Assembly (NCBI RefSeq): GCF_000189555.1
Contig: NC_017276.1
Origin: Saccharolobus islandicus REY15A
Lineage (GTDB): Archaea > Thermoproteota > Thermoprotei_A > Sulfolobales > Sulfolobaceae
Direction: 5' to 3' (one strand)
DNA: 64,000 nucleotides
Shown: positions 1,043 to 16,825 of the stretch, one piece after another
How positions within the stretch are numbered: the first letter of the stretch is position 1
Layout of the letters: each line of letters opens with the position of its first letter
Translations under genes and position numbers: made by a program
The notes under the pieces: model-generated
Seen by the model: only the letters and a program-made list of their open reading frames with translations
Told to the model about the DNA's origin: nothing
Database searches by the model: none

Positions 1043-1783
1043 ATGAGAGGAAAAGAACTCATAATTGCGCTTTCCATATCTCTCGGAATTGCAGTTGCTA
1101 TATTATCGTTGCCAGATATACTAGAGCCCATAGCACATAAAATATTATTAGTCTTAGGCATTTATTGGCCTTTAGCAATTTTTATAATAGGTATAGTTCA
1201 TGGACTTAAACCTGACGAACATACATGGCCAATTACCGTATCCTATGGAATAATGCAGAGGAATATGAAAGGTGCAATAGTTTCTACAAGCGTTTTCGCA
1301 GGGGCATTAACACTCGTCTGGGCTAGTTTGAGCGCATTGACTGGACAACTTCTCTCATTCTTTCAGAATTACAACTTAGACCCAATAGTAGATGTTATAG
1401 TAGGGCTGACAATGATAGGAGTTGCCTTAATTTTCATTATTAAAGGCAAGGATAAAGTTGTGGATAAAGATAATAATCCAGATTACAAATTAATCTGGAT
1501 TCACGGACTAGCTGCGGCCTTTGGAGGGGATTTTATAGTAATATTGTTATTAACCATTGCCCTAAGTACACTTATTAGTGTGAATGTCACCTTCTTAATT
1601 GGACTATTATTTGGAATAGGTTCATGGATAGCCCAATCCATAGTGGTTTTATTAATATACAAAGGTTTGGTCAAAGGAGTGAAAGCGAATTTCCAAATTC
1701 TAGCTAAGGCAGGGAGGCTATCACTACTATTTCTAGGAATTTTTATGATAGGGTTGGGAATTTTAAGCTCTCTAACCGGTTAA
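1043..1783 (+). CDS. Multi-pass membrane protein, NiCoT/UreH/RcnA-like metal transporter or DsbD-like permease
   Basis: About 6 TM helices with His motifs GIVHGLKPDEH and WIHGLAAAFGGD, resembling nickel/cobalt transporter superfamily motifs. Confidence 0.55.
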   Translation: MRGKELIIALSISLGIAVAILSLPDILEPIAHKILLVLGIYWPLAIFIIGIVHGLKPDEHTWPITVSYGIMQRNMKGAIVSTSVFAGALTLVWASLSALTGQLLSFFQNYNLDPIVDVIVGLTMIGVALIFIIKGKDKVVDKDNNPDYKLIWIHGLAAAFGGDFIVILLLTIALSTLISVNVTFLIGLLFGIGSWIAQSIVVLLIYKGLVKGVKANFQILAKAGRLSLLFLGIFMIGLGILSSLTG

Positions 1784-2442
1784 AAATCTTTTATACTCTT
1801 TTCGGTCAACTTCGCAATAGCCTTTCTTAAAACTTGCATTATGGCTGGTTTAGAAATACCCAACTCATTTGCTAACTCCTCTAGTCCTATTCTTTTAGGC
1901 GTTTCGAAGTATCCCTTATCAAAGGCTAGCTTCAGAATTGATAATTCCTTAGGCGTTAGCTCTTCCTTTACTGAAAGGAGTGGATTTGAAGATTCCTCAA
2001 TAATTTTAAACTCATAAGTAAGCTCTTTCACCTCTGGTATGATCTTAATGAAGTTTTCGGAGTCAGCAATTACGTTCCATCTTTCCATTCCTTCATATAT
2101 AGTTTCTGACATGCTAAAAATTCTACAATCCTTTAATAATCTTTCAGCTATTCTTCCTTTAAGACTCTCTATCGATGCGTATATTGCTCTGATATTAGAT
2201 TTGTTTTTGTACTCATCTATTATTCTGAAATCAATAGTTGTTTCATTTCTACTCAGCATTCTAATTATTTGCCTATAAGACTCCTTGTCCTTAGCGTAAA
2301 TTATACCCATAACGTTTTCAGTGAGTCCATCTAATGATGGAATTCTCCTTACAACCTTTACATATAATTCCTCTTCGTTAAATCTCTCAGTGTAACGACT
2401 CCAATCGTCGTGTGAGAGCACTATGGTGTAACTTTTTATCAT
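1780..2442 (-). CDS. HTH-10 (bacterio-opsin activator type) transcriptional regulator
   Basis: C-terminal LTPKELSILKLAFDKGYFETPKRIGLEELANELGISKPAIMQVLRKA is the HTH-10 signature. Confidence 0.85.
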   Translation of the reverse strand: MIKSYTIVLSHDDWSRYTERFNEEELYVKVVRRIPSLDGLTENVMGIIYAKDKESYRQIIRMLSRNETTIDFRIIDEYKNKSNIRAIYASIESLKGRIAERLLKDCRIFSMSETIYEGMERWNVIADSENFIKIIPEVKELTYEFKIIEESSNPLLSVKEELTPKELSILKLAFDKGYFETPKRIGLEELANELGISKPAIMQVLRKAIAKLTEKSIKDF

Positions 2443-2492
2443 TATAGAATATAGTAATGTTTGAATTTAAAAGGATTAGATGGTTCATCTTA

Positions 2493-4151
2493 CTATGAAA
2501 TTCTATCTTTCTCACGAATTATAATATATATTGCAATTGATACTAGTAATATGATAACATAGACGATAATATAATTCGTAAAGCTATCATTATCCCGAGG
2601 AATACTGAAATTTATCTCATGGAGTTTATCTCCCAGTGATAAGTACAATTTACCCTTATGATATAACACTATAGTATTATTATAAACTCCTACGACAAAA
2701 TATCCCCTAGGTATATAAATGGTGGAATTTGGCAAGCTTATAACTAATTCATAAGTACCGTTATTGTATTTCATTATTATGGGAGAACCTTGAATTAAAG
2801 GAAAGTTCTGATAGAAGAATATAGGATTATGGTAATACTGTACAGAGTTGTTCTCCACAACAAGACCAGTTGAAATCATTGTACCCGAGGGAAGGCTATT
2901 TAAACCTCTCTTACCAATTTGATAATATGATATAGTCGAATTGTAAAAAAGTATTAATAAGACAGATTTATTGTAAATATAAAAGTTCGATACGTTATGA
3001 ATATTTAGTCCATAAGTAGTATTAAATAGAACTAAGTATAGATAGGGATTGAAGTTGGCTAACAAATAATAATCTGAAATACGATTCGCAACCGATGGTA
3101 AAACGTTAACAGAATAATTGACTATGTTGATAATGGGCCCTACTTCAATAGACAGTGGGACAACAATTGGATTAACAAGGGTTAAGCTACTTGAAAGCAG
3201 TACTAAGGGAAAGAGCGGTGTATATATTGCATAAGGCTTCTCTAGTTGTTTGGTATAATTATTTATCTCTAAGCTTTCCATATAACTCCCATTAATAGAG
3301 TAAACCGAGATGTTACTTTCGTTGTAGAATACTAGAAATCGCAGACCCTCTAGGTTAGAAGGAATATATCCACTCATATACCCCCTAAATTTAATCTCTG
3401 TAGAACTTATTGACCCCGTATTTAAATTTACGGCTTCTATTTCATATTCCCCTATTGTGGAATTAGAATATATAGGATAAACTATGTAAATCCAGTTTTT
3501 ATATGTGAAAATGGGTAATACTTCATTTAGTGGAAAGAAAGACCCAGTTATAATATGATCTTTAATTAGTGTAAGATTTAAGGGATATCCGATAACATCG
3601 CTTATGCTAATATTCTTTTCATATTTATTAATAAAATTAGTTGCTGATATAGAAATATTATAAATGGGAATGTTTTCCTCTAAAAGTGAACCATTAGTGG
3701 TCATATTTCTACTTATTACTCCCACTAGCTTCTTGCTAATCAGAACTATATAGTCTCCAGTTAAGAGTGGATACTGAACAGAATAATTATAATTTAGCTT
3801 TATATTACTAATTAAGGTTAACGAGGAGTCTATAACATAGACTGTTAAACTTCCTTGTGCACGCATCTCAATTACTAGATATCCATCGTAAGTGTACGTT
3901 AGAACGTTGGACTCGTTAAGAGAAATGGTAGGCAAAGTTATTCTATTTCTATTAACATCTTCTAAAGTTATATTTAGAAAATCAGCTTTAGAAGTCTGGA
4001 TTACCATTATTGGCTTTCCTTCTAAGACAATTAAACTGATGAATATATTTTTCATACTGCTCGTCTTAACCAATATACCATTACAAAATTCTGATAAAAT
4101 CAATACTATTAATATGATCGTTAATACTCTTGACGCGCGCTTCTCACTCAT
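2493..4151 (-). CDS. Secreted/membrane-anchored hypothetical protein (beta-rich)
   Basis: 552-aa ORF with N-terminal hydrophobic signal, C-terminal TM helix plus basic tail, many sequons. Confidence 0.75.
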   Translation of the reverse strand: MSEKRASRVLTIILIVLILSEFCNGILVKTSSMKNIFISLIVLEGKPIMVIQTSKADFLNITLEDVNRNRITLPTISLNESNVLTYTYDGYLVIEMRAQGSLTVYVIDSSLTLISNIKLNYNYSVQYPLLTGDYIVLISKKLVGVISRNMTTNGSLLEENIPIYNISISATNFINKYEKNISISDVIGYPLNLTLIKDHIITGSFFPLNEVLPIFTYKNWIYIVYPIYSNSTIGEYEIEAVNLNTGSISSTEIKFRGYMSGYIPSNLEGLRFLVFYNESNISVYSINGSYMESLEINNYTKQLEKPYAIYTPLFPLVLLSSSLTLVNPIVVPLSIEVGPIINIVNYSVNVLPSVANRISDYYLLANFNPYLYLVLFNTTYGLNIHNVSNFYIYNKSVLLILFYNSTISYYQIGKRGLNSLPSGTMISTGLVVENNSVQYYHNPIFFYQNFPLIQGSPIIMKYNNGTYELVISLPNSTIYIPRGYFVVGVYNNTIVLYHKGKLYLSLGDKLHEINFSIPRDNDSFTNYIIVYVIILLVSIAIYIIIREKDRIS

Positions 4152-4213: not shown

Positions 4214-4385
4214 GGGGTTTGGGCTTCATTGAATTTTCATGAATTTGTATCCAATTCTCAGCCGTTGGGCTTCAACAGAGTCACGGGGCATTGCCCCGTT
4301 CATACCCCTCCGCCCCTTTAGCGGGATAACCCCAACCCACACCCGTGGAGTATCACGGATGTGGGGAAACCCGCACATCTTGAGG
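4214..4385 (-). ncRNA. Candidate omegaRNA (reRNA) scaffold overlapping the tnpB 3' end
   Basis: Stacked hairpins on the minus strand: GATGTG/CACATC, CCGTG/CACGG, ACGGGGC-AAT-GCCCCGT, AGCC/GGCT; position matches known TnpB right-end RNAs. Confidence 0.55.
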
Positions 4386-5521
4386 TAGATGTTGAGAGAT
4401 GCGTTCAACTGTCTATCCAAGGTGAACCCACACCTCACACACCTAAAAGTCCTGCCAACCTTTCGGGAAACCCATCCACATCTGGGGCAGGACTTGGAAG
4501 TGTGGTAAGGGTTAACCTCCTTCAAGAAGGAACCGTAAAGCGGTGCCCTGTACTTAAGCACACGGTGAATCGTCCTCCACACAGTCCTTGAAATCTTTTT
4601 AGAAAGGGAGTCGTTAGCGTCTTTGAACATCTCTTGCCTATTCAGTTTTTCAACAGCGAACATCGTGAGAGGATACATCTCCAGTAAACTGTTCACGAAC
4701 TTGTGAATATAATCCAGCACACGGTTCCTCTCTCTATGAGAATACTTCCTCAACAACTCCTTCCCCTTCCTACCATGCTTTGAAGCAAAACGTTGTATTC
4801 TACCCCTCTTTAGTTCCACACCGTATTTTAGACTATACAACTCCTTCAAGGAAAATGTAACGAACTTCTCTCCATCATAAGCATCTAGAGTATAAAGGTT
4901 ACTATCAATTGCTAGGAAATCTAGGGGAGTAAACCAAGGTAATCTGTAGCGGAACGGTAAATACACCTTATCCTCCTTAATTATGGGCTCACCTAACTCA
5001 AGCCCTTTAACCCGCTTAGAAAACCATTTGTGAGACCAAGAGAATGTGACGTATTCGTAAGGTCTTACAGTAATCCTAACACTCCCACCATTAACCTTTC
5101 TGAGCGTCGATTTTACTCTAACGTAAACCTTCTTTAGTCTAGGTTTCCTCAGTGATGCTTGCCCCTTCTCAGCCCTCCTCTTCCAACCCCTTAATATTGA
5201 GTAAGCGTCGTTTATTGCTTTGTCCACGTAGTGAGAAGCTAAAACGTTAATCTTCTCTAACTCGTCTCTCAACACCTTATTCACTTCCTTTTTCTTAGGT
5301 AACTTGACTTTGACCTTCGTGAGTACTTTTTTGCCCTTCTTCACTTCTTTTCTCTCTACCTTAGTCCTCTCCCACAGCCAGTCTAATGCTTTCTGTAGTA
5401 GGACTCTGTAGTTCTCCAGTAGTATTTTCGTCTCCTCCCTCTTGTTGTTCTTTATGGAGTAAGTTAGGTAAATGTACTCCTCCTCTGGTTTGAATGATTT
5501 AATTCTTAAGTTCTTCGACAC
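4226..5521 (-). CDS. tnpB: TnpB RNA-guided endonuclease
   Basis: RuvC-I AIDSN, RuvC-II FAVEKL, Zn finger CPRCG/CVRCG, RuvC-III DRQLNASLNI all present. Confidence 0.93.
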   Translation of the reverse strand: MSKNLRIKSFKPEEEYIYLTYSIKNNKREETKILLENYRVLLQKALDWLWERTKVERKEVKKGKKVLTKVKVKLPKKKEVNKVLRDELEKINVLASHYVDKAINDAYSILRGWKRRAEKGQASLRKPRLKKVYVRVKSTLRKVNGGSVRITVRPYEYVTFSWSHKWFSKRVKGLELGEPIIKEDKVYLPFRYRLPWFTPLDFLAIDSNLYTLDAYDGEKFVTFSLKELYSLKYGVELKRGRIQRFASKHGRKGKELLRKYSHRERNRVLDYIHKFVNSLLEMYPLTMFAVEKLNRQEMFKDANDSLSKKISRTVWRTIHRVLKYRAPLYGSFLKEVNPYHTSKSCPRCGWVSRKVGRTFRCVRCGFTLDRQLNASLNIYLKMCGFPHIRDTPRVWVGVIPLKGRRGMNGAMPRDSVEAQRLRIGYKFMKIQ

Positions 5522-6082
5522 ACTTCTTCACCTTTTCGTATTTGTGACTCCTCATTCCGTAGAGTTTTTCACTGAATGATACTAGGATTGAGATCAGATC
5601 CTCTATCAACTCTTGTTCTGGTGTTTTGTCCTCCCTATTAAGAACTACTATTTCGCAGTTGTGTGCTTTGCATACTTCTTCTATTATCTCGAAACCGAAT
5701 CTAACTAGTCTGTCTGGGTAAGCTATGACTACTTTTGACACCTCGTTGTTCAGTATCATTCTTAATAATTTGAGGAATCCCTTCCTCTTCATGTTTAACC
5801 CAGAACCTACGTCTGTTATTATTTGGTCGTAGTCCTTTACTTGTTCTTGCAGGTATTTTACTTGGTTTATTAAGTCGTCTTTTGTGTGTTTGATGGTACC
5901 CTAGCATAAAGTATCACTTTCCTCTTTCTTACAATCCCCATTAGCTTTTCCACATCCTCTTCTCTGAACCTCCACTTTCCAGTCTCTAGTATTACTGGTT
6001 TGATATAACCCTTCTTAACGTAGCTCTGTAAAGTGCGGTATGATATTCCTAAGCGTTGGCATACTTCCTTAGGTTTTAGAAT
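5499..6082 (-). pseudogene. tnpA: IS607 TnpA serine recombinase, inactivated
   Basis: Reconstructed (M)LKPKEVCQRLGISYRTL...ILYARVPSNTQ/KDDLINQ...; start is ATT (6080-6082), catalytic-motif Ser is Pro (CCA 5894-5896), 1-nt deletion in A-run at 5880-5883. Confidence 0.88.
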
Positions 6083-6373
6083 TGTAATTAAATGTGTATA
6101 TAAAGTATATAAACTTCACGATTTATCGAAAACTGCTAACAACGGCTTTTTGGAAAGTGCCGTCACTTAACTACAAATTAAGTAAGTTTACTGACCTTGA
6201 TAAAGAGAAGACGCTAAACCAATATAATTAATATACGTTTGGAATATCAAGGAGAGAATTTATAGCTTAATGACTGCATTATCTTCACATTCAAGCATTC
6301 AAGGAAAATCCTATAACTGCTGTTATCAAATCACAAGAAAATATATTAGGTTTTAAAACGAGTAAACTTTAAC

Positions 6374-7087
6374 GTGATAAGGGCAATAAACGTAAGTAAA
6401 ATTTTTCACGGAAGTTTTGCAGTAGTTGAAGTTAATCTAGAAATTTATGAGAACGAGAAGGTAGGAGTTATAGGTGTTCATAACTCAGGGAAGACTGTAC
6501 TACTTCAGATGCTAGCTGGAGATGTGAAACCAACTAAAGGTAAAGTGTATTTAGAAGATAAGAGGAAGATCGCTTATATACCTCAAGTACCCAAATTTAT
6601 ACCCACTATCAGTGTTAAAGACGTAATGACTTATGTTAATAAGGAGTATCATTATTTAGATTTTGTTGGCTTAGATGGAAATAAGAAGGTTAAGGATCTA
6701 TCCTTAGATGAGAAAAAGAGGTTGTCCTTAGCTCTTTCATTACCTTTTTCCCCTAACCACCTCATAGTCGATGACATGTCCCAAATTTCTTCTCTAACTA
6801 AAGATTTGATAAGGAGATTTAAAGGAGGTGTGATAATTGCTCACCATAACCTTAAGGATATATGGGATTTAATAGATAGAGTTATAATTATGTCTAAGGG
6901 TAGGGTCGTTTTCGATGGTCCCAAGAGTGGATTGTTGTACAAGGTTATAAGATTTAAGAATAGTGAGATATGGGAAAGGGAAAACGAGAATAGTATCGAA
7001 AGTGATTTAGATAAACGTGGAGTTAAGTATGAGGTTATTAGAGTGACACCAGATGAGGTTTTCCTATATTTTTATGCAGGAATTTAA
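6374..7087 (+). CDS. ABC transporter ATP-binding protein (degenerate motifs)
   Basis: Walker A GVHNSGKT, signature region LSLDEKKRL, Walker B LIVDD, H-loop IAHH. Confidence 0.8.
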   Translation: MIRAINVSKIFHGSFAVVEVNLEIYENEKVGVIGVHNSGKTVLLQMLAGDVKPTKGKVYLEDKRKIAYIPQVPKFIPTISVKDVMTYVNKEYHYLDFVGLDGNKKVKDLSLDEKKRLSLALSLPFSPNHLIVDDMSQISSLTKDLIRRFKGGVIIAHHNLKDIWDLIDRVIIMSKGRVVFDGPKSGLLYKVIRFKNSEIWERENENSIESDLDKRGVKYEVIRVTPDEVFLYFYAGI

Positions 7088-8057
7088 AAGATCAATTGTA
7101 TTCGTCTTCTTAATTCTTATAGCTCTGAGTCTGTCACTAATAGCTGCGCAAATTCTTTCCGAATCGATAAGCGTTATAGGAATCGTTGAGGGCTCTTCTT
7201 ATGGGATAAAAGTATCAGGCTATGTCTTTGACTTTCAAGGAAAAGGTGTAAGTTCAGAAATAAAGTTGTCATACTACAATTTCACAGAGAGCGTTAAGAC
7301 AAATAATGGGTCATTTTACTTGTATCTTCCAGTGGCTTATATTCAGAATAATACTAGGATTAACGTAATAATAAATTCATTTCAAAAGAACGTAAATCTA
7401 ACATTAACTATACCAAACTCTTCAACTACTTTCGGTTTTTCAAGCCTCTTTTTAAAATATTATTCCAGCCAAAATCTTTCAATAATAAGCGTTAAGGGTA
7501 AAACTTTCATCGCAGTAGATCCTAAACAAGATAGTTCAAATTATACAATTTTTGAGATTAATTCAGATAATGTTAATCTTCCTCTAGATGTCAATTTCAC
7601 CTACAATAATTTTTCAAACACGCTAAAGATACCTCTCATTATCCTTTTATTATTTTTCTTTTCCTTTATCGAATTGATGGACTACTATTTATTATCCTCT
7701 TTTCCTAGAGGCGAATTAAGGCAAATTATGAGGTTAGTAGGAACAATTAAAGTATATGTCGGAAAGTTAATAGCTGAGATACCTTTGACAATTATGTTAT
7801 CCAGTCTGCCATTTTATTTGTTTGAATTCATTTTGATAGGTAATGACATCGCCTTGATTTTACCTTATATGATAGCTTCAATCTCTTTCTCTTTAGGTGT
7901 TTACGGTTTGGCGCCATTCGGAAGTAAGAACATGATATATTATTCTGTAATATTAGGATTTTATATCATAAATTTAGTAATATATGATAGATACTTATAT
8001 TCTCTCTTAGCAACTCTTCTCCTAATAGTTGGATATATAAAACTGAGAATTTCCTAG
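7053..8057 (+). CDS. ABC transporter permease-like membrane protein with extracellular domain
   Basis: Overlaps the ATPase; N-terminal TM, large loop, several C-terminal TM helices. Confidence 0.65.
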
Positions 8058-8590
8058 ACAAGTATTAAATACACAATGACAGCAATGTATATCACACTAC
8101 CTACTATTATCCATAATATCTTGTTATTTACAACGTTAAACTTTCGTAAAACCAAAGAGTCTATTGAGAAATTACCAGAACCATAGGCTATTATGTACGC
8201 GTTTATTATCATCATTAGAAGATTTAACCCATATTCCTCAGCTCCAGTCCAGCTAGCAGATAAGAAGTAAATTAGGTTAGTGTAAAATGCTACTACACCA
8301 CATAGTCTGCTCATTAGCCCTATAAGGATTAGAATCCCAAAGCAGATCTCTCCTATCATCACTAAGGTTCCAACTAGAACCGGATGTGGCATTGCGACTA
8401 TGTATAAAAATTGCCTTATAATAGATCCTTGGGCTAAATACTGTATTGTAAAACCTACATATTGTTCGGAAGATGGATTCAGAAATCCTGAATTGAGAAG
8501 TTTTCCTAAAATACCCGCATAGAGCCATATGGAAGCCATTGATATCCTTAAAATTAATGTAAAATTATCGGAGATCATTGTCTTTGCCAT
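8054..8590 (-). CDS. DoxD/DoxX-family membrane protein (similar to thiosulfate:quinone oxidoreductase small subunit)
   Basis: [17 protein letters not shown]...[16 protein letters not shown]...GSGNFSID pattern typical of DoxX/DoxD. Confidence 0.7.
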
Positions 8591-9486
8591 AACAATCCCT
8601 CTCTTAATTTCTTGCTAATTTGTATGAGAGAGTACAATGATAAAGAGAGAATTGCCACTCCAGCAACTACGGGAGAGGAGAGTAATATTAATTGGGAGAT
8701 AGTAGAGAGTAAGGGCATTCCCATATAGATTGTGTACTTCCACACTAGGTTTTTACTTATTAATGGGAACGAGGAGGAAGCGAGATACAATAGTGAATTT
8801 ATTGCAGTAGGGGTTAAGCAGCAAATTCCCGCTATTGTTCCAATTGATGGGACAGAGGCTGTCAAAAATCCTCCTGCAATGTTTGTTGCAGTTATCCTAA
8901 AGGTCTTTGGTACTTTCCATTCCATTAAATTGTATGACACATATATTAGTGATATGGTATAGTAGCTTAGCATGAACGCAAATGATAGTATTAACGTGTT
9001 TAATAGAGCAAAGATGATCATTGGTATGTTAAGAACGAAGAAATTAAAGTAGGTTTGAATTCCATATGCATCGTATGTTATAGTTGTTAGCTTTAAAAAA
9101 TAGGGGCTAATGTTGATGTTCGGGACCAAGATGACTCCGCTAACTATTAGGAAGGATACTAAATAGGAAACTGAATAGAAAATTAGTATTTTTCTAAACG
9201 CCTTATCGTTTAGAAGACTCTTCATAATATTTAATACGGTAAAGTCTCCTTTCACTAGTATGAATTTGTTCTCCTTATGTCTATAAAGGAAGTACCCAAA
9301 TATACTAGAACAAGCAAGATATATAACGGTGAATGTTAAGAAGGGAAGTATAAACGTTTGTTGTCCGGTATCAGATAAGGGAGAATACCACAAACTAACT
9401 ATCCTAATCCCATTTATTAAAATTGGGAGAAATACGGTAAAATTAAAAAACAAAAAAGTATAGAAATATGGATGTAGGACTTTCAT
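8575..9486 (-). CDS. Multi-pass membrane protein with a vicinal-cysteine CCxxP motif
   Basis: Hydrophobic ORF; likely start ATG 9486 (MKVLHP) after a GGGGA RBS; motif [11 protein letters not shown]. Confidence 0.7.
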
Positions 9487-9496
9487 CCTTATTCCC

Positions 9497-10717
9497 CTAA
9501 CAGTGAAGCCCAGTAACTGGAGGTAACAAAACGTTATCAACTAGGTAAGTTGCTACTTGGTTTTGAACTGGAATTATCACTGCTGGAGCGGTAGACAAAG
9601 GTACATAGCTACTTACCGTTAAACTACTTACGGATATTAGAGCTATTATACCACCTGATTGTACATTACCGTGAATCACTACATATGCGTACTGCCCTCC
9701 AGGCATAAGTTCTATATCTGCTAAGCCTTTAACACTAAATGTTGGCAAGTCTATAGTTTTGACTATCTGAAAAGTGGATGTGGATATCACAAACACTTGA
9801 TTCGCATTTGAAGGTGCCTCAAGGTAGTAATCTCCATTTGGAGTGAATACACCCCTCTGTGGTATTGTACCGTTGGGCATTTGTAAGATGCCTAGCAATT
9901 TCAATGATGGTAGAGAGTAAAACCCAACTGAGTTATTTCCAACGTACTCTACCGCTACCATTGTGCCTTGCATATTAGGGCTTACCATATAGGGTTGTGA
10001 ACCAGCAGCAGTAGGTAAAACCTTAATTAAGCTACCGTTTAACGCTATAAGATCAACGCTGTTGTTAAATCTCATTGGAACTATTAAATAGTTTCCATCT
10101 GGACTCCATCTAACGTCACAAGGATAATACGTTCTACCATTAACTGGAGAGACGAAATGCTGTTCCCATAATACGTTAAGAGATGAAACGTTGATTAGAG
10201 CTAAGATACCGCTTGGACCATCTGCTACTGCGACTAGTTGTTGACTTGGTGAGTATGCAACTCCTATAAATCCTATACTATTTCCAAAATTGAATTCCTT
10301 TACGATCTTTAAACTATTAGCATCGATTGCGTAAACTGTACCATTATTTACTGGTATGAGGTAATATCGTGATTGTGCAGCATTTTCAAATGGATACTCA
10401 ACCCACCAGTATACTTGTTGTGGTACGTTTGTAGAGATGTTAATGGAATGCGTATATCCTTGGAAAGGAGTAGTGGATGATGGGTTTATTATTTCTGCAA
10501 TTCCTTTCTGTGTGAATACTAGGAAACTGTATTGAGGAGAATTAGTAGTAGAAACTGAACTACTGGTAGTTTGGGTCGAACTAGGTATTGATGACGATTG
10601 AGACTGCTTTAACATAATGTATGCAGCCCCTACTCCTATCAATATAATTATTATGAGTCCTACTATTAACCATAATTGATAACTGGACAACGCCTTTATT
10701 AACTGCTTTTTATTCAT
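9497..10717 (-). CDS. Membrane-anchored extracellular YVTN/YncE-like beta-propeller protein
   Basis: N-terminal TM, S/T linker, repeated blades (VAYSPSQQ, VRWSPDG, VSPNM, VFTPNG; VFVIST..IVKTI); ends GLHC. Confidence 0.8.
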   Translation of the reverse strand: MNKKQLIKALSSYQLWLIVGLIIIILIGVGAAYIMLKQSQSSSIPSSTQTTSSSVSTTNSPQYSFLVFTQKGIAEIINPSSTTPFQGYTHSINISTNVPQQVYWWVEYPFENAAQSRYYLIPVNNGTVYAIDANSLKIVKEFNFGNSIGFIGVAYSPSQQLVAVADGPSGILALINVSSLNVLWEQHFVSPVNGRTYYPCDVRWSPDGNYLIVPMRFNNSVDLIALNGSLIKVLPTAAGSQPYMVSPNMQGTMVAVEYVGNNSVGFYSLPSLKLLGILQMPNGTIPQRGVFTPNGDYYLEAPSNANQVFVISTSTFQIVKTIDLPTFSVKGLADIELMPGGQYAYVVIHGNVQSGGIIALISVSSLTVSSYVPLSTAPAVIIPVQNQVATYLVDNVLLPPVTGLHC

Positions 10718-10719
10718 TC

Positions 10720-10845
10720 GATTCCCTCAAAATATTACGTATTTTTAGGTAATTATAAAAGTTGTGATATTATAAACCCTTATTAAAGTTAATATAATTA
10801 AATTGTAATAATCATATCTACAGTATCTAATACTTTTGCATAAAA
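10720..10845 (-). repeat. Left copy of a perfect 126-bp inverted repeat (dsrE 3' end + promoter + RBS)
   Basis: Manual comparison: exact reverse complement of 12678-12803. Confidence 0.95.
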
Positions 10846-11016
10846 TTAAGAAAACCCTTGAACCAAAATAAATTAGGTGACTAAGAAAATTCTTCATCAA
10901 CATTTTTCTTATTGTTATATCATAAGAATAGACTTTTTATTCTTAAAATTAAATTCAGTTATGCACTAAATGGCTGAAGATAAGTTTTTTAAATAGAATT
11001 AACATCATTTTAAACA

Positions 11017-11991
11017 ATGATAGAGGAAACTACACTGATTTACGCTGAAGATTTCAAGTCATTGTTAGACCTCGAAAACTCGTATAAGTTATATAAATTA
11101 TCAAATATAAAAAAGCTAGATTTTGGGTATATTTGTTACCTCACCATATTCAGACTAAAAGTAGAATGTATATGCAAGCCGAAAAAGGATGGCCTTGATA
11201 TAATAGAAAAGAATGGAAGATTCATAATAAATATAACGTTCCAGAAGGAAAGCGAAGAGAGAATAAACGTAAAAATAAGTTACAGAGGAATTCTTGAAAA
11301 ACTCCTAAGTAGTATAGCAAATTCAATAAGGAAAAATTTAGAAGAATATTCAAAATATTTGGTAAGAAAGCAAAAAGTTGAAAATAATCTTAGAATTTCT
11401 ACTCTTAAGCCAGATAAAGTAGTAGATCTTAGAGGAGAAGAGTGCCCAGTTCCTGAAATAACGTTAAAGAGAGAATTGATGAAGGCTAATAGGGGAGAAA
11501 TAATAGAAGCTTTAACTGATAATCCAGCTGCAGTAGCTCACACTATCCCAGAAATAATTAAGTTATTTAACTGTAGATATGAGGTCCTAAAATATGAAGA
11601 TTACGTATCTTTTAGGATTTTAGTTTTAAGTAATACGATTAACACTGATGAATACGTTAAGGTAATTAAGGAATTCAACGAGGCTAGGATTAGAGAACTA
11701 ATTAGGGATAAGAAATTCATGTCGTTTTTATACACATATTTCGTGAAATTCCATAAAGCTGAAAAAGTTAATGATTTTAAGAATTATAGATTTAATTGTG
11801 AAAAAGACATTTGCCTAGTTTCATCAGCACCTTTAGGTAGGGGATGGCTATTTACTGGACTGATTAAGAGTAACAAAATGGTATGTGCTAGGATTGACAC
11901 TGAAAATGAAACCTTATTAGATTACCAAGCATTAGAATATTTAAAGAAGTTAGCTGGAGAAACAAATGTCATGTATTTATCGTTAGATTGA
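11017..11991 (+). CDS. Multidomain protein with a central TusA/SirA sulfurtransferase domain
   Basis: Central [13 protein letters not shown]...EALTDNP TusA motif, flanked by ~120-aa N-terminal and ~115-aa C-terminal domains. Confidence 0.8.
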   Translation: MIEETTLIYAEDFKSLLDLENSYKLYKLSNIKKLDFGYICYLTIFRLKVECICKPKKDGLDIIEKNGRFIINITFQKESEERINVKISYRGILEKLLSSIANSIRKNLEEYSKYLVRKQKVENNLRISTLKPDKVVDLRGEECPVPEITLKRELMKANRGEIIEALTDNPAAVAHTIPEIIKLFNCRYEVLKYEDYVSFRILVLSNTINTDEYVKVIKEFNEARIRELIRDKKFMSFLYTYFVKFHKAEKVNDFKNYRFNCEKDICLVSSAPLGRGWLFTGLIKSNKMVCARIDTENETLLDYQALEYLKKLAGETNVMYLSLD

Positions 11992-11995
11992 CTAT

Positions 11996-12397
11996 TTGCA
12001 AAAATTTATTTGGACTAAGCGTGTATTTCCCATTATGGAGCTTAAGGATGAATGTGGTTGCATAGTTAATAGGAAATACGCTTCAGACTTTCTAATGAAA
12101 AGGTTATTTAGCTATAAGAAGAAGATAAATGCCAAAAAATTGGGCTATTTTAGAATAGATAATTCTAGGTGGTTCACACTCTATAGGGCTCAAGATGGGA
12201 AAATATATTATGAAAGTTCTGAATGTCCACTACTCATAATAACCTTAGAAGCACTCTGTGAGAGATATATTGAAAATGAGGGAAAAATAAATAGAGATAA
12301 CTCCATGGAAAAACTACGTCAAATCAAGGGATTTACAACTAACCAGATAGTGAATGAAGTTGTTGAGAAATTTATAAATGGTGTCAGCAATGGTTAA
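11996..12397 (+). CDS. Hypothetical Cys-containing protein
   Basis: 133-aa ORF (TTG start) coupled to both neighbours; ECGC, SECP and LCE cysteines. Confidence 0.65.
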   Translation: MQKFIWTKRVFPIMELKDECGCIVNRKYASDFLMKRLFSYKKKINAKKLGYFRIDNSRWFTLYRAQDGKIYYESSECPLLIITLEALCERYIENEGKINRDNSMEKLRQIKGFTTNQIVNEVVEKFINGVSNG

Positions 12398-12725
12398 GAA
12401 AATTGCCTATATAGTTGAATCCAATTTGGGTTCTTATATTTTAGGGCAGATGGTAGTACCGCAGTTGGAGGAAAACAGACACAACGCTGAAGTTATTGGA
12501 ATGTTCTTTATACACGATAATGTCTATATTCTAATGAAAGATAATCCCTTAGCCGAAAGATTAGGTAAACTTAGTAGGGAAAGGGGCATATATTTGCAAG
12601 CCTGTGATCAATGCGTATACATGAGAAATTTAGCTGATAAACTAATAGAGGAAGCAAAGATAGGCTGTTTCCCTGACTTTTATGCAAAAGTATTAGATAC
12701 TGTAGATATGATTATTACAATTTAA
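12390..12725 (+). CDS. DsrE/DsrF (TusD)-like sulfur relay protein
   Basis: VIGMFFIHDNVY and LQACDQC motifs; likely start ATG 12390 after a GGTG RBS. Confidence 0.8.
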   Translation: MVKKIAYIVESNLGSYILGQMVVPQLEENRHNAEVIGMFFIHDNVYILMKDNPLAERLGKLSRERGIYLQACDQCVYMRNLADKLIEEAKIGCFPDFYAKVLDTVDMIITI

Positions 12726-12803
12726 TTATATTAACTTTAATAAGGGTTTATAATATCACAACTTTTATAATTACCTAAAAATACGTAATATTTTGAGGGA
12801 ATC
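12678..12803 (+). repeat. Right copy of the 126-bp inverted repeat
   Basis: Last 16 codons of dsrE, then TATA-like TTTATAAT/TTTTATAA and RBS GAGGGA before the tusA GTG. Confidence 0.95.
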
Positions 12804-12806
12804 AAA

Positions 12807-13055
12807 GTGGAAGATCTAACTTTAAGACAACCAGATGAGGTTCTTGATGTTAGAGGAGAGGAATGTCCTGTTCCAGAAATGAGCGCGAGCAAAAAATTGA
12901 AGAAAATGAAAGTAGGACAAATGTTAGAAGTGTTAACAGATCACGAACCCGCAGTACATGTTACTTTACCTTCTTTATGTAAATCCTTAGGATACCCATT
13001 TGTAGTGATAAGAGATAACGGACTTTACAAGGTGAGAATCCTAAAGGTGAAATAA
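12807..13055 (+). CDS. tusA: TusA/YeeD-family sulfur carrier
   Basis: [20 protein letters not shown]; 82 aa. Confidence 0.92.
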
Positions 13056-13058
13056 TCA

Positions 13059-14288
13059 ATGCCAAGTATGGTACTACAGCCAGTACTTCAAGAGAGTTGG
13101 GCATTAATCTACGGATTATTCGCTCTTTCTGGATTTATTTTGGGTTGGGCAGCCCAAAGAGGTAATTATTGTTTTGTAAACGCAATGACTTCAATATTTA
13201 CGGCCAAAAGTTATGAGCGATTTGGAGCCCTTTTAATACTATTCGGTTTGTCCGCGTTAGGAAGCGGATTATTAGTTGCATTTGGAGTTATTCCAGCATT
13301 TGATCAGTATTATTATAACTATTTTGCAGGTTGGTATATCCTTGTTGGCTCTATAATATTTGGCTTTGGTGCAGCATTAGCAGGTGGTTGTAATCTATCA
13401 ATGCTTTATAGGGCTGCTAGTGGGTATGTTCAAAATTGGATAGAGCTATTCGGAATGATGATAGGCACATATGTATTTGCAATAGGTATATGGCCCTTCC
13501 AGCTATACACAATGGCTAATGGGATTTTATCAACTACGAACGGAGGATATGTTGAATACTTGCCCTACATTATATTTCACTCAATTTCAAATATGTCAGT
13601 CTATATAACCACGTTAGTAGTTAGCCTACCACTAATATTCATTGGAATATACTTGCAACAGTACACTAAGAGAAAATGGGCAATCTCATCTAGTCTACGC
13701 ATCAATTTACCTGCAGCTAGAGCGTATTATAATCAAAACATAAGTACATCTGGAGAAGAAAATGTATCGTTAACCAAGGAAATTAAAGATTTGATACTAT
13801 TAAGAAAACCATATGGAACTAACTTAACTACAATAATATTGGCATTAGATTTACTTTTAGTTTTCATAGTTGGTGCTGGATACACCTTCAATTACCTAGT
13901 CATAACTTCGTCTGATGGCGGTAGATTCTTTGAATACTTGCTAATGTTAGGAAACGTCAAGTTATTTCTAAACACACCTTGGTTTAACGATTCGCTACCA
14001 ATTGTCGACCCAAGTACGCTAATGGTAATAATGTTGTGTATTGGAGCTTTCTCAGCATCATATCTAAGTGGTGACTTCAAAATACGAATACCAAGAAATA
14101 AGAGTAGACTGCTGATAGGGTTCGGAGGAGGAATGTTAGTTGGTATAGGCGTTAGAATGGCCCTTGGATGCAATGTAGGATTAATGTGGACTAATTTTGC
14201 CCAATTAGGTTATGACGGTATTATATTCCTCTTCGGAATGTTATTAGGAGTTTATTTAGCGATTAAAGTCCAAGAGAGGTGGCTATAA
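13059..14288 (+). CDS. yeeE: YeeE/YedE-family thiosulfate (sulfur compound) transporter
   Basis: Three conserved Cys motifs: QRGNYCF, ALAGGC, MALGCNVG; directly downstream of tusA. Confidence 0.88.
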   Translation: MPSMVLQPVLQESWALIYGLFALSGFILGWAAQRGNYCFVNAMTSIFTAKSYERFGALLILFGLSALGSGLLVAFGVIPAFDQYYYNYFAGWYILVGSIIFGFGAALAGGCNLSMLYRAASGYVQNWIELFGMMIGTYVFAIGIWPFQLYTMANGILSTTNGGYVEYLPYIIFHSISNMSVYITTLVVSLPLIFIGIYLQQYTKRKWAISSSLRINLPAARAYYNQNISTSGEENVSLTKEIKDLILLRKPYGTNLTTIILALDLLLVFIVGAGYTFNYLVITSSDGGRFFEYLLMLGNVKLFLNTPWFNDSLPIVDPSTLMVIMLCIGAFSASYLSGDFKIRIPRNKSRLLIGFGGGMLVGIGVRMALGCNVGLMWTNFAQLGYDGIIFLFGMLLGVYLAIKVQERWL

Positions 14289-14566
14289 TGATTTCCTTAC
14301 CAATTATTAGAAGATTATTAGCACCCTTAGTAGTAAGTTTATTTGCATTAGGTTGGTATGGATTCTCAGTACAATACATAGTTTCCAACAATAATGTGGC
14401 ATTAGAAAACGGCGTATTTTCAGCTTACATATCCCCATCACAATTGCAAGGATATATAGAGGCAACCAGATATATTTGTTATGTAGTAGTTTATTTGGGA
14501 CTCATATTCTTCTGGTATAATCTAGTTAAGACGGTTAGAGAATTGGAGGAGGCGAATAAACAATGA
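14279..14566 (+). CDS. Small two-TM membrane protein
   Basis: 95 aa, two hydrophobic segments, overlapping operon junctions. Confidence 0.65.
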   Translation: MAIMISLPIIRRLLAPLVVSLFALGWYGFSVQYIVSNNNVALENGVFSAYISPSQLQGYIEATRYICYVVVYLGLIFFWYNLVKTVRELEEANKQ

Positions 14567-14925
14567 GTGATTTATATGCAATAATGGTAATATCTGGAGA
14601 AGATGAAAAACTCTATATGGCCTATATAACTGCCATAGGCTACGCCTCTTCTGGAAATAAAGTGTACATGTTCTTCACCATGGATGGGTTAAGGGGAGTA
14701 ACAAAGGAAATAGAGAAAATACAGCTACCTAACGTAAAGCCATTATCCTATTACTATGAAAATCTAATAGAATTAGGAGGTGATGATATAGAACTTACAG
14801 CATGTGAATTTGGAATGAAAGTTAAGAACGTTAATCATGAAAGGCTATTGGATAAGGTTAAGATAAGCGGTGTTTCGGAATTCGCATTAAAGAGTTCCGA
14901 GGCTAAAGCCACATTAATCTTTTAA
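14563..14925 (+). CDS. DsrE/DsrF/DrsH-like (peroxiredoxin-family) protein
   Basis: VYMFFTMDGL and LTACEFGM motifs. Confidence 0.82.
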   Translation: MSDLYAIMVISGEDEKLYMAYITAIGYASSGNKVYMFFTMDGLRGVTKEIEKIQLPNVKPLSYYYENLIELGGDDIELTACEFGMKVKNVNHERLLDKVKISGVSEFALKSSEAKATLIF

Positions 14926-14958
14926 AAATTTTTTAGTGTCAATAACGTATTTCGTAAT

Positions 14959-15834
14959 ATGAGCGTGATTGATGCTATCAATTTAACAAAGAGGTATGGC
15001 GATATTGAGGTACTCCATGGCCTTACATTCCCCATAGAGGAAAAGAGTATAACCTTAGTAATGGGTCCTAATGGTGCGGGGAAATCAACACTGCTTAAAA
15101 TAATTGGCGGGCTAATAAATAGAACATCAGGCTATATAAGTGTTTTAGGAGAGGATCCTTGGAATAGCAACAAAATACCAAGAAAAGTTGGGATAATATT
15201 GGATAGGCCATTTTTACCACCATACCTTACTGTAATTGACATAGTGAAGGAAGTCTCCAGTGAATTTAGCTATCCTCTCAGCGACGCTAAAAGGTTATTA
15301 GAAGACTTTAATCTAGTACATTTTATGAAAAATAAAGTTAGAGAACTTTCAGCTGGTACTAAGCAGAAATTACAAATAGTCTTTTCCTTGATAAAAAATC
15401 CTGAAATAATTATAGCAGATGAACCTACAGCTAATCTGGACATAACATCACGATACGAGGTCTACAACACTTTTGCAGTGTTAAGAGAAAAAATGGGCTT
15501 AACTGTACTCATATCATCCCATATACCAGCTGAAATTTTAGCGTTCTCAACTCACGTCCTGGCAATAAACAATGGAATTATGAAGTTCTTCGGCAAAGTA
15601 GATAAGCTATTAAGAAATAATTTTCTCGAAGAGTTTTACATAGTGGTTGATAATATAGGTAAGGCTCTAGAAGCGTTAAAGGATAGGAGGATAGAAGTCA
15701 TAGGTAACCAGATAAGGATTTCTGGAAACTTAGCTGAAATTTCTAAAATCTTATCCAATGCTGGGGTAAGGATATTTTACGTTAGAAATTCTATAATAGA
15801 TAAAAGTATCAAAGGGGAGACGGGGTGGGAGTAG
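14959..15834 (+). CDS. ABC-2 type transporter ATP-binding protein
   Basis: GPNGAGKST, LSAGTKQKL, IIADEPT. Confidence 0.92.
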   Translation: MSVIDAINLTKRYGDIEVLHGLTFPIEEKSITLVMGPNGAGKSTLLKIIGGLINRTSGYISVLGEDPWNSNKIPRKVGIILDRPFLPPYLTVIDIVKEVSSEFSYPLSDAKRLLEDFNLVHFMKNKVRELSAGTKQKLQIVFSLIKNPEIIIADEPTANLDITSRYEVYNTFAVLREKMGLTVLISSHIPAEILAFSTHVLAINNGIMKFFGKVDKLLRNNFLEEFYIVVDNIGKALEALKDRRIEVIGNQIRISGNLAEISKILSNAGVRIFYVRNSIIDKSIKGETGWE

Positions 15835-16442
15835 TTAGCTTTCTAATCAAGCATCGATATGGTGAATATGGATTACTCTCGTACATTGACTTAGAGTTGG
15901 CCTTAAGTGTTAGTATAGTGGCATCATTTAATTTCTTTCATCCCCAGACTAGAAATGCAAGCGTTGATCAGCTCCTATTCAATATAATTACATTTACAAT
16001 AGGTATAATATTATCTACACTAGTTATAAGGAATATATGTCTAGGGATGGGGCAAGATCTATATGACGGAACAATAATATCGTTTTTACAAATGAGAAAT
16101 AGGAGGGCAATATTTCTTCTATCATATTTCATTGATGTTTTGCTAATAGGTGGACTATTTCTCTTGATTGCAGAATTAGTATTTCTTCTATCATCATTTA
16201 CTCCACCCATAACATGGATAAGCATTTTCATATCCGAATACTTACTCCTCTGTAACTCCTCCTATTTGATTGCAATATTGATTAAAAGACCCTTTAGAAG
16301 CTTCTTCATAAGTATAAGCTTAATCTTCCTCGTTCTTGGAATAGAAATAACTGGAAATATGATTATATTTAATTATCTTTTGCCACTAGATCTAATTTTG
16401 GGTTACCTAGCATACTATGCCTTTAGGAAGGTGCAGATATGA
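15825..16442 (+). CDS. ABC-2 type permease
   Basis: Multi-TM ORF overlapping the ATPase. Confidence 0.72.
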   Translation: MGVVSFLIKHRYGEYGLLSYIDLELALSVSIVASFNFFHPQTRNASVDQLLFNIITFTIGIILSTLVIRNICLGMGQDLYDGTIISFLQMRNRRAIFLLSYFIDVLLIGGLFLLIAELVFLLSSFTPPITWISIFISEYLLLCNSSYLIAILIKRPFRSFFISISLIFLVLGIEITGNMIIFNYLLPLDLILGYLAYYAFRKVQI

Positions 16443-16825
16443 TGAGAGTAGGCATATATTTAATCTCTTTAGGTATTTTCATACTAGTACTAGGAGAGAT
16501 AACGTTTCCTTTAAACACTACATTAAACGTCAACAATAGCAGTATGTATATAATCCCTCCATGGTATGAAAAGGCAAAAGTAAGTGTGAATAGTGGAAGT
16601 TTTCTCATAGTTTATCATAACTATACGTACATATTATTAGTAAAAGGGAGTATCACTATTAAACCAGCCTCAATACTATATGGAGTTGGCAACGCCAGTA
16701 TACTATTAGAAGGGTATAAGATTTTTTACAATCAATCATATATTGCAATTGGAATTTTCCTCATAATAGTAGGAGTTGGGCTAGAGATCATTAGATTTAA
16801 GAGAAGAAAAGATCACCAATTTTAG
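16439..16825 (+). CDS. Small membrane protein (TM-loop-TM)
   Basis: 128 aa, terminal TM helices, ATGA overlap with the previous gene. Confidence 0.65.
   Translation: MMRVGIYLISLGIFILVLGEITFPLNTTLNVNNSSMYIIPPWYEKAKVSVNSGSFLIVYHNYTYILLVKGSITIKPASILYGVGNASILLEGYKIFYNQSYIAIGIFLIIVGVGLEIIRFKRRKDHQF

Follow-up and report, generated by a model that had tools for sequence, protein, structure and literature searches.

Described systems for handling inorganic sulfur that come closest to the locus reported here are the bacterial YeeE-YeeD thiosulfate importer, the DoxDA protein pair of Acidianus and tetrathionate hydrolase (TetH), the last being a PQQ-like eight-bladed propeller. In SoxY, which ends in GGCGG, and in DsrC/TusE the sulfur-carrying cysteine sits on a C-terminal arm. 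Free thiosulfate decomposes in hot acid. In a 64,000-nucleotide (nt) stretch of Saccharolobus islandicus REY15A (NC_017276.1; GC content about 33%), which we call the window and to which all coordinates refer unless a locus is named, we analysed a three-gene operon encoding a surface beta-propeller (PROP), a membrane protein with vicinal cysteines (MEMB) and a DoxD-like protein, close to an operon for the sulfur carrier TusA and the transporter YeeE. The passage of inorganic sulfur across the membrane of thermoacidophilic archaea is called unclear in a section of the Sulfolobales literature (PMC5461723), and YeeE-mediated thiosulfate uptake is proposed in a passage of PMC11323534. A preliminary description of the locus, made from the letters of the window, had presented the three genes as a candidate TetH/DoxD-like thiosulfate-tetrathionate module. 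Our comparisons uphold the link with sulfur trafficking and point away from TetH and from a central place for the DoxD-like protein, and we tentatively read PROP and MEMB as the outward-facing accessory module of a sulfur uptake system.

Conserved linkage with the TusA-YeeE operon

The co-occurrence with yeeE and tusA, on which the proposed link to sulfur trafficking hinged, was evaluated from both sides. A first set of loci was anchored on MEMB and comprised one genome per GTDB species (15 loci) together with S. tokodaii, S. acidocaldarius SUSAZ and a metagenome-assembled genome of Marsarchaeota. The TusA-YeeE pair was found within a few kb in 18 out of 18 informative loci, that is, those not cut by a contig end, the sole exception in the set being one locus that is so cut. 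PROP directly precedes MEMB in the uncut loci of all lineages, with a gap of 1-20 nt. A second set was anchored on YeeE, by scanning metagenomes with the YeeE of this clade, and PROP and/or MEMB was present in 24 of the 25 loci with enough flank. The linkage spans three archaeal lineages, Sulfolobales, Marsarchaeota and Nitrososphaerales, and persists at identities down to 34-39% for MEMB and 44-48% for PROP. These synteny counts exclude a chance adjacency of PROP-MEMB and TusA-YeeE. The preliminary description would have been refuted by homologous operons seldom lying near sulfur genes, and the counts clearly show the opposite.

Gene order is reshuffled among genera, and even among S. islandicus strains, while the genes remain together. 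The full Sulfolobales set consists of a TusA-fusion gene, p133, a SaoD-like gene, PROP, MEMB and DoxD-like, plus TusA-YeeE-small95-DsrE. It forms one co-directional string in Stygiolobus, Metallosphaera and Acidianus, and is split into two or three blocks of varied orientation in S. tokodaii, S. acidocaldarius and Saccharolobus; the MEMB and DoxD-like genes overlap in every Sulfolobales locus. Among the YeeE-anchored loci, the one without PROP and MEMB, L036, is 99.9% identical to L037 and L054, from the same population, from just upstream of tusA onward and wholly different leftward, which reflects either a strain rearrangement or an assembly join.

Nitrososphaerales and Marsarchaeota keep PROP-MEMB, TusA-YeeE and small95 and are without the DoxD-like gene and the SaoD block. 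The lineages without DoxD-like have instead a membrane protein of about 300 amino acids (aa) with two invariant histidines (L009-L015, L019 and L038-L056; for example L010:8211-9143) and an internally repeated W/G-x-x-N-G/L ... H pattern, for which neither Pfam nor NCBIfam gave a match. This two-His protein may be a non-orthologous replacement of DoxD-like, and is perhaps a heme- or metal-binding redox subunit. The Nitrososphaerales loci also contain a protein disulfide oxidoreductase (PDO), which reaches 212 bits with TIGR02187 where the cut-off is 185, as well as DUF169, an AAA ATPase and an HxlR regulator. While PDO is found in all of them, L010, L011, L042 and L060 encode in addition a CysK/M-like pyridoxal phosphate enzyme with a rhodanese insert (in L010 the CysK/M-like and PDO genes lie at 1608-3104 and 5603-6253). 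From its gene content, this neighbourhood reads like a thiosulfate-to-cysteine assimilation island.

The surface propeller PROP

PROP has a short, basic N-terminus followed by one hydrophobic helix at residues 17-35, a Ser/Thr-rich linker and a domain with seven N-x-S/T sequons. It is thus predicted to be a membrane-anchored, glycosylated surface protein of a kind usual for Sulfolobales, in agreement with the extracellular location given in the preliminary description. With its counterpart in S. islandicus Y.G.57.14 the protein shares 99% identity. Its C-terminus reads ...PPVTGLHC, and the motif YL(V/A)DNVLxPPVTGLHC is near-invariant in, and specific to, the PROP family. The terminal His-Cys (LHC) is kept in 28 of 29 relatives at 39-93% identity, the sole relative without it (P0164) being a family member on a Nitrososphaerales-type contig that ends in GQQG. 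Cys200, in the motif YPCDVRW, is likewise near-invariant among relatives.

An AlphaFold2 (AF2) model made with the 29 relatives had a mean predicted local distance difference test (pLDDT) of 82.9 and showed 26 strands, consistent with seven four-stranded blades. A short helix (386-396) follows the blades, and residues 403-406 have a pLDDT below 50, so that in the model the C-terminal tail is probably flexible. The top Foldseek match in the PDB was 1L0Q, the YVTN propeller of a Methanosarcina mazei S-layer protein (E 1e-16, TM-score 0.60), followed by generic WD40 propellers and NirN/NirF; the comparison with TetH and YncE that had been suggested as a check thus returned no signal of either. 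Matches in Pfam and NCBIfam were weak and at the level of the fold (Lactonase, 21.8 bits; lactonase-type NosZ; hydrazine synthase beta), and a PROP profile searched against PDB sequences retrieved hydrazine synthase beta (E 2.5e-8), lactonase-like proteins and BamB, with TetH, YncE and AztD absent from the matches. No PQQ-family Pfam match was seen at E<=0.1, nor any SoxY or DsrC domain in Pfam. Given the seven-bladed YVTN fold and the lack of any PQQ or TetH match, PROP has no specific relation to tetrathionate hydrolase, and the kinship proposed earlier is not supported. The score against YncE (NCBIfam NF052280) was 12 bits (E 0.067) where the cut-off is 400 bits, and the public name "YncE family protein" is a fold-level label only.

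The orphan membrane protein MEMB

No match to MEMB was found in Pfam or NCBIfam. A word-indexed search retrieved 82 relatives, all annotated as hypothetical, from Sulfolobales, Candidatus Aramenus, Nitrososphaerales/Thaumarchaeota and metagenome contigs. A HMMER search of 1.84 billion representative proteins with a profile of 25 relatives returned no more than family members, fragments of them and a single frameshifted copy. The AF2 model (pLDDT 70.9, predicted template modelling score 0.72) is weakest just past the cysteines and had no Foldseek match below E=1; the MEMB profile had no match in the PDB, and hhalign found no relation to the YeeE or the DoxD-like profile. By its sequence MEMB is an orphan family, and across Pfam, NCBIfam, profile and Foldseek comparisons it resembled neither archaeosortase/exosortase nor any other known family.

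The vicinal cysteines noticed earlier are a hallmark of this family, as ICCLTPT is invariant in the 25 relatives at 33-86% identity. Judged from the alignments, the conservation of ICCLTPT in MEMB and of the terminal LHC in PROP exceeds chance. Hydropathy and the distribution of Lys and Arg indicate, as a simple-rule prediction, six helices with both termini inside, and Cys222-Cys223 are predicted to lie at the outer end of helix 5, facing the propeller side. This is the single conserved Cys pair of MEMB, and the protein has no recognisable catalytic domain.

The DoxD-like protein

The description of the third gene product as a DoxD/DoxX protein without a neighbouring DoxA was borne out: it matched Pfam DoxD (PF04173) with 211 bits (E 1.3e-62), and no DoxA was found with Pfam among the flanking open reading frames (ORFs), MEMB and a 334-aa neighbour included, nor next to DoxD-like in the public gene calls of S. 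tokodaii, S. acidocaldarius and S. islandicus. Canonical doxD adjoins doxA, as in the two doxDA pairs of A. brierleyi listed in the supplement of PMC11323534. Against the NCBIfam model of the large subunit of thiosulfate:quinone oxidoreductase (TQO), TQO_large_DoxD (NF041179), the protein scored 31.4 bits, far from the equivalog cut-off of 300 bits, and its profile had no match in the PDB. Orthologues (50-93% identity) occur in Sulfolobales only. By sequence comparison DoxD-like is a paralogue of the TQO subunit DoxD, and its public name, "TQO small subunit DoxD", claims more than is known of it. Because it is restricted to Sulfolobales, we regard it as an add-on and not as the core of the module, contrary to the role it was first given.

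Locus layout

The features of the locus are collected in Table 1. The ORFs of PROP, with its His-Cys end, of MEMB, with its ICCLTP motif, and of the DoxD/DoxX protein are located where the preliminary description had placed them, head to tail on the minus strand. Its claim of translational coupling is confirmed by the 10 nt that separate the TAG of PROP from the ATG of MEMB and with the 16-nt overlap of MEMB and DoxD-like. The mechanical ORF of MEMB starts at a TTG (9540), but the start is most likely the ATG at 9486, which is preceded by GGGG..AGG, with GGGGAATAAGG standing ahead of the start codon, and gives 303 aa, as do the public gene calls.

Table 1. Features of the PROP-MEMB-DoxD-like locus and its partner genes in the window
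Feature	Position	Strand	Basis
PROP, membrane-anchored extracellular seven-bladed beta-propeller (predicted), 406 aa	10717-9497	minus	ORF, transmembrane (TM) helix, AF2, Foldseek
MEMB, orphan polytopic membrane protein, 303 aa, about 6 TM helices (predicted)	9486-8575	minus	alignment, profile search, hydropathy
DoxD-like, DoxD/DoxX-family four-TM protein, 178 aa	8590-8054	minus	Pfam DoxD 211 bits
Inverted-repeat left arm, promoter/leader of PROP	10717-10850	none	repeat comparison
TusA fusion, 324 aa, central TusA domain with CPxP	11017-11991	plus	Pfam TusA 55.6 bits; synteny
p133, small conserved protein, about 120-133 aa	11996-12397	plus	synteny
SaoD-like, DsrE-family, 115 aa, CxxC motif	12378-12725	plus	NCBIfam SaoD 131 bits, Pfam DsrE, synteny
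Inverted-repeat right arm, same promoter/leader for tusA	12673-12806	none	repeat comparison
TusA/YeeD-type sulfur carrier, 82 aa, ECPVPE motif	12807-13055	plus	Pfam TusA 69.4 bits
YeeE/YedE-family transporter, 409 aa, three invariant Cys	13059-14288	plus	Pfam Sulf_transp 188 bits; 6LEO alignment
small95, 95-aa two-TM protein after YeeE	14279-14566	plus	synteny
DsrE-family protein, 120 aa, last gene of the tusA-yeeE operon	14563-14925	plus	Pfam DsrE/DrsE_2; synteny

An ABC ATPase gene and that of the 334-aa membrane protein, which has no Pfam match (6374-8057), were considered as members of the system and set aside, as they adjoin the cluster only in Saccharolobus. The genes directly 3' of the DsrE gene (14959-16825, plus strand), for a 291-aa ABC ATPase and for two proteins of 205 and 128 aa of membrane or unknown type, are also neighbours of the cluster only in Saccharolobus. 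Further away, at 4226-5907 on the minus strand, there is an IS607-type element with ORFs for a TnpB/Cas12f-like protein (431 aa) and for a truncated serine recombinase (Resolvase). It sits between ABC transporter genes and a 552-aa ORF, where other S. islandicus have about 290 bp.

A duplicated promoter/leader and a segment found in both orientations

The preliminary description had put the three genes under the same promoter as tusA-yeeE. That operon begins on the plus strand about 2 kb from the PROP operon, and because of the opposite strands and this distance the two are not one transcription unit, so a single shared promoter does not hold; what does hold is that the promoter/leader sequence is duplicated by an inverted repeat. 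The repeat is 134 nt long, with arms 98% complementary, and through it the same sequence of about 127 nt stands directly upstream of the start codons of both PROP and tusA. This shared sequence contains the last 16 codons of the SaoD-like gene, left as a relic in the arm before PROP, and after them a leader of 80 nt in which AAGGGTTTATAAT and TTTTATAATT boxes and GAGG are found. The PROP and tusA operons are therefore headed by two copies of one promoter/leader. In other Sulfolobales a AAGGGTTTA(T/A)AA box is found 55-65 nt ahead of the start codon of both PROP and tusA, which suggests two similar promoters rather than one. The boxes were read directly from the sequence, the host being an archaeon. 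An Rfam scan of 7800-15000 for riboswitch or leader RNA gave no match at E<=1.

Between the repeat arms lies a 2.1-kb segment (10717-12806) with the TusA-fusion, p133 and SaoD-like genes, and in metagenome contigs 99% identical to the window this segment is found the opposite way round. Of eight S. islandicus-like places whose PROP is identical, two have the orientation of the window and six the inverted one; the commoner orientation is also that of the remaining Sulfolobales, with the SaoD-like gene followed by PROP. As the 3' end of the SaoD-like gene is part of the repeat, this gene is intact in either orientation. The flip determines which operon, PROP-MEMB-DoxD or tusA-yeeE, stands downstream of the three-gene block.

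The partner operon and the SaoD-like block

The transporter belongs to the YeeE family by its Sulf_transp domain (PF04143, 188 bits) and by the adjacent TusA-like CPxP protein (69 bits). Its C38, C111 and C371 are invariant and align with C22, C91 and C293 of 6LEO, the thiosulfate importer of Spirochaeta thermophila; E. coli YeeE cannot do without the corresponding cysteines (PMC7449682). Between Sulfolobales and Nitrososphaerales (the window against L009, L010, L013 and L015) YeeE is 62-65% identical, far above PROP (44-48%) and MEMB (36-39%) at the same loci, and these values suggest either very strong constraint on YeeE or its lateral transfer among acid-adapted archaea. The small95 gene overlaps the end of yeeE and directly follows it in Sulfolobales, Marsarchaeota and Nitrososphaerales; the product has no family assignment and probably represents a small subunit, so far undescribed, that belongs to this YeeE clade.

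The TusA fusion is part of a Sulfolobales-specific module that normally precedes PROP, in which p133 always stands between the TusA-fusion and SaoD-like genes and the SaoD-like gene is directly upstream of PROP in most Sulfolobales. The SaoD-like protein has a CDQC motif and a further Cys, scored 131 bits against NCBIfam NF040732 (cut-off 169), and falls in the related non-SAO branch described in bioRxiv 10.1101/2022.07.06.499078. In S. solfataricus (L071/L072, about 2955-3920) a DDE transposase lies within this conserved block, between the TusA-fusion gene and p133.

Proposed role and alternatives

We propose that PROP and MEMB, joined by DoxD-like in Sulfolobales, constitute an extracytoplasmic and membrane accessory module of TusA-YeeE-DsrE sulfur acquisition, cysteine chemistry included, and give this reading a rough probability of 0.45. 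A role of the module in sulfur uptake, taken on its own, is highly probable: the link to sulfur is well supported, and the chemistry is what we infer from the conserved residues. Assimilation at low pH is favoured over energy metabolism by the host range, in which S. islandicus, a heterotroph, stands beside S. acidocaldarius SUSAZ, Nitrososphaerales and Marsarchaeota, and by the cysteine-synthase-like and PDO neighbours in Nitrososphaerales. The terminal Cys of PROP could act as a swinging-arm carrier, comparable to the arms at the C-terminus of SoxY or DsrC, that captures inorganic sulfur at the acidic surface, in the form of tetrathionate, thiosulfate or polysulfide bound as a Cys-S-thiosulfonate or persulfide. 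Tetrathionate, being acid-stable, would be a good candidate substrate, and its reaction to a thiosulfonate on the cysteines of Metallosphaera DsrE3A and TusA is reported in a passage of PMC5461723 (citing Liu et al. 2014). The sulfur bound to PROP might be exchanged with the Cys-Cys of MEMB beside YeeE, freeing thiosulfate at the mouth of YeeE, whose cysteine triad would hand sulfur inward to TusA and the DsrE proteins. In Sulfolobales, DoxD-like could then reset the disulfide via the caldariellaquinone pool, for example by quinol-driven release of thiosulfate from tetrathionate; outside Sulfolobales this task might fall to the two-His membrane protein. Such a complete outside-to-inside Cys relay, from the PROP arm over the MEMB Cys-Cys and the YeeE triad to TusA/DsrE, with a quinone- or heme-linked subunit resetting the outer thiols, is a doubtful though conceivable extension of the proposal.

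Several observations weigh against the accessory-module reading or against parts of it. At pH 2-3, thiolates make poor nucleophiles. A conserved Cys on the cytoplasmic side is lacking in MEMB, which for this reason cannot alone move electrons across the membrane, while in the alignment the DoxD-like orthologues have no conserved Cys or His, and it is membership of the family that leads us to infer a quinone role for this protein. The transporter scores 71.9 bits against the TsuA equivalog (cut-off 645) and 100.9 bits against the selenium-linked YedE/FdhT, its best NCBIfam match (cut-off 350). L036 carries the YeeE operon without PROP-MEMB within 7 kb. Lastly, the sulfur-induced YeeE of Sulfolobaceae is, in a passage of PMC11323534, reported to be absent from S. 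tokodaii, and since S. tokodaii has the cluster described here, that report gives no expression support; it may concern a different paralogue.

A quinone oxidoreductase of the TQO/TetH type, in which DoxD-like provides the quinone site and PROP and MEMB replace DoxA in a dissimilatory turnover of thiosulfate or tetrathionate at the surface, would account for the strong Pfam DoxD match, for the overlap of the MEMB and DoxD-like genes throughout Sulfolobales and for the sulfur neighbourhood. In TQO, thiosulfate reduces caldariellaquinone, and the lack of DoxA would call for a different partner. For Sulfolobales this explanation overlaps with the one we favour. However, PROP-MEMB occurs without any DoxD-like in Nitrososphaerales and Marsarchaeota, the DoxD-like score is a tenth of the TQO cut-off (31 against 300 bits), the propeller is of the seven-bladed YVTN type with no TetH or PQQ signal, and heterotrophs that do not oxidise sulfur are among the hosts. 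What stays constant as a partner is an importer together with sulfur carriers of the cytoplasm, a combination that suits uptake better than an energy-yielding reaction at the surface, and we consider a TQO/TetH-type enzyme unlikely.

Handling of soft metals or metalloids (Hg, Cu, Zn, Se) was already named as an alternative in the preliminary description, and would take CCxxP as MerT-like, His-Cys as a metal-chaperone site and the SaoD- and YedE-like proteins as a route for metal or selenium. The CC-L-x-P in a TM helix does recall MerT, as a lead only, and His-Cys and Cys-Cys are typical soft-metal ligands. Relatives of SaoD outside the SAO system are reported in bioRxiv 10.1101/2022.07.06.499078 to adjoin the propeller chaperone AztD and binding proteins of metal ABC systems, and the best NCBIfam match of YeeE is to a selenium-linked family, though below its 350-bit cut-off. 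But significant Pfam or NCBIfam matches to MerT, AztD or YncE were not found, and the neighbourhood of the cluster has no conserved genes for a metal ATPase, mer, cop or ABC metal uptake; the conserved partners there are TusA (in several copies), DsrE and YeeE, accompanied in Nitrososphaerales by the cysteine-synthase-like protein with rhodanese and by PDO. The metal alternative is weakened by these results and appears improbable. More improbable still is a pair for anchoring or maturation, where the C-terminus of PROP is tethered or processed by MEMB, for example by a stable disulfide or some other modification at Cys406, and PROP is only a non-covalent binding protein or scaffold for YeeE. 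The strict one-to-one adjacency of PROP and MEMB in all lineages fits it well, the conserved C-terminal helix and tail of PROP resemble a docking peptide, and one conserved Cys pair without a recognisable catalytic domain would suffice for MEMB. Yet PROP is already anchored at its N-terminus, no sortase-type tripartite signal was seen, MEMB is unlike archaeosortase/exosortase, and DoxD-like, as well as the two-His protein in its place, would be left unexplained.

Under the sulfur-acquisition reading, the module offers concrete and genetically tractable candidates for the missing extracellular step of sulfur uptake. It also defines an orphan membrane family with an invariant Cys-Cys motif, and it is a case where the names given in public annotation, "TQO small subunit DoxD" and "YncE family protein", fail to capture the function of the genes. 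The occurrence in Nitrososphaerales from soil and peat and in Marsarchaeota widens the question beyond hot springs. If the relay were true, it would let acid-dwelling archaea import sulfur species whose free ions do not last or do not react at low pH, and MEMB would be a new class of membrane protein for sulfur or thiol transfer.

Comparison with known systems

With YeeE(TsuA)-YeeD(TsuB) of Spirochaeta thermophila (6LEO/8K1R) the archaeal cluster has in common the Sulf_transp domain, the three aligned essential cysteines and an adjacent TusA-like partner, and thereby the logic of a cysteine-guided import of inorganic sulfur species. Whereas the bacterial system has two components, the archaeal cluster adds the propeller, the orphan Cys-Cys protein, the small two-TM protein and DsrE proteins and, depending on the lineage, a DoxD paralogue or the two-His protein, and its YeeE scores below the equivalog cut-offs of both TsuA and YedE. 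DoxDA of Acidianus ambivalens compares with the third gene through the Pfam DoxD/DoxX family, the same host order and a thiosulfate-related context, but here there is no DoxA, the TQO cut-off is far from reached and the orthologues form a group of their own confined to Sulfolobales.

TetH of Acidithiobacillus and Acidianus is, as is PROP, an extracytoplasmic beta-propeller of acidophiles; PROP differs in its seven-bladed YVTN/lactonase-like fold and in matching neither PQQ nor TetH families. Its best fold match, the M. mazei S-layer protein 1L0Q, is also a seven-bladed archaeal surface protein, but PROP is only 18% identical to it, has no PKD domain and possesses its own conserved Cys200 and C-terminal tail. 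To SoxY and DsrC/TusE the resemblance is functional only, namely a conserved Cys ending a flexible C-terminal arm: the fold of PROP is unrelated, it has no SoxY or DsrC domain, its terminal motif is LHC, and its carrier chemistry is putative. MerT, to which the motif of MEMB has been likened, has vicinal Cys-Cys followed by x-x-Pro in a TM helix near the outer face. In MerT this is the first TM helix, whereas the pair of MEMB lies in the fifth predicted one; MEMB also differs in size and number of helices, has no sequence or profile similarity to MerT, and has neighbours related to sulfur and not to mer.

In the literature searched we found no description of a cluster of propeller, Cys-Cys protein and DoxD-like protein. 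The transporter and the carriers are of a known kind. New to it are the surface propeller that ends in Cys, the orphan membrane family with its Cys-Cys pair and a third subunit specific to each lineage, and there is a substantial chance of a new mechanism.

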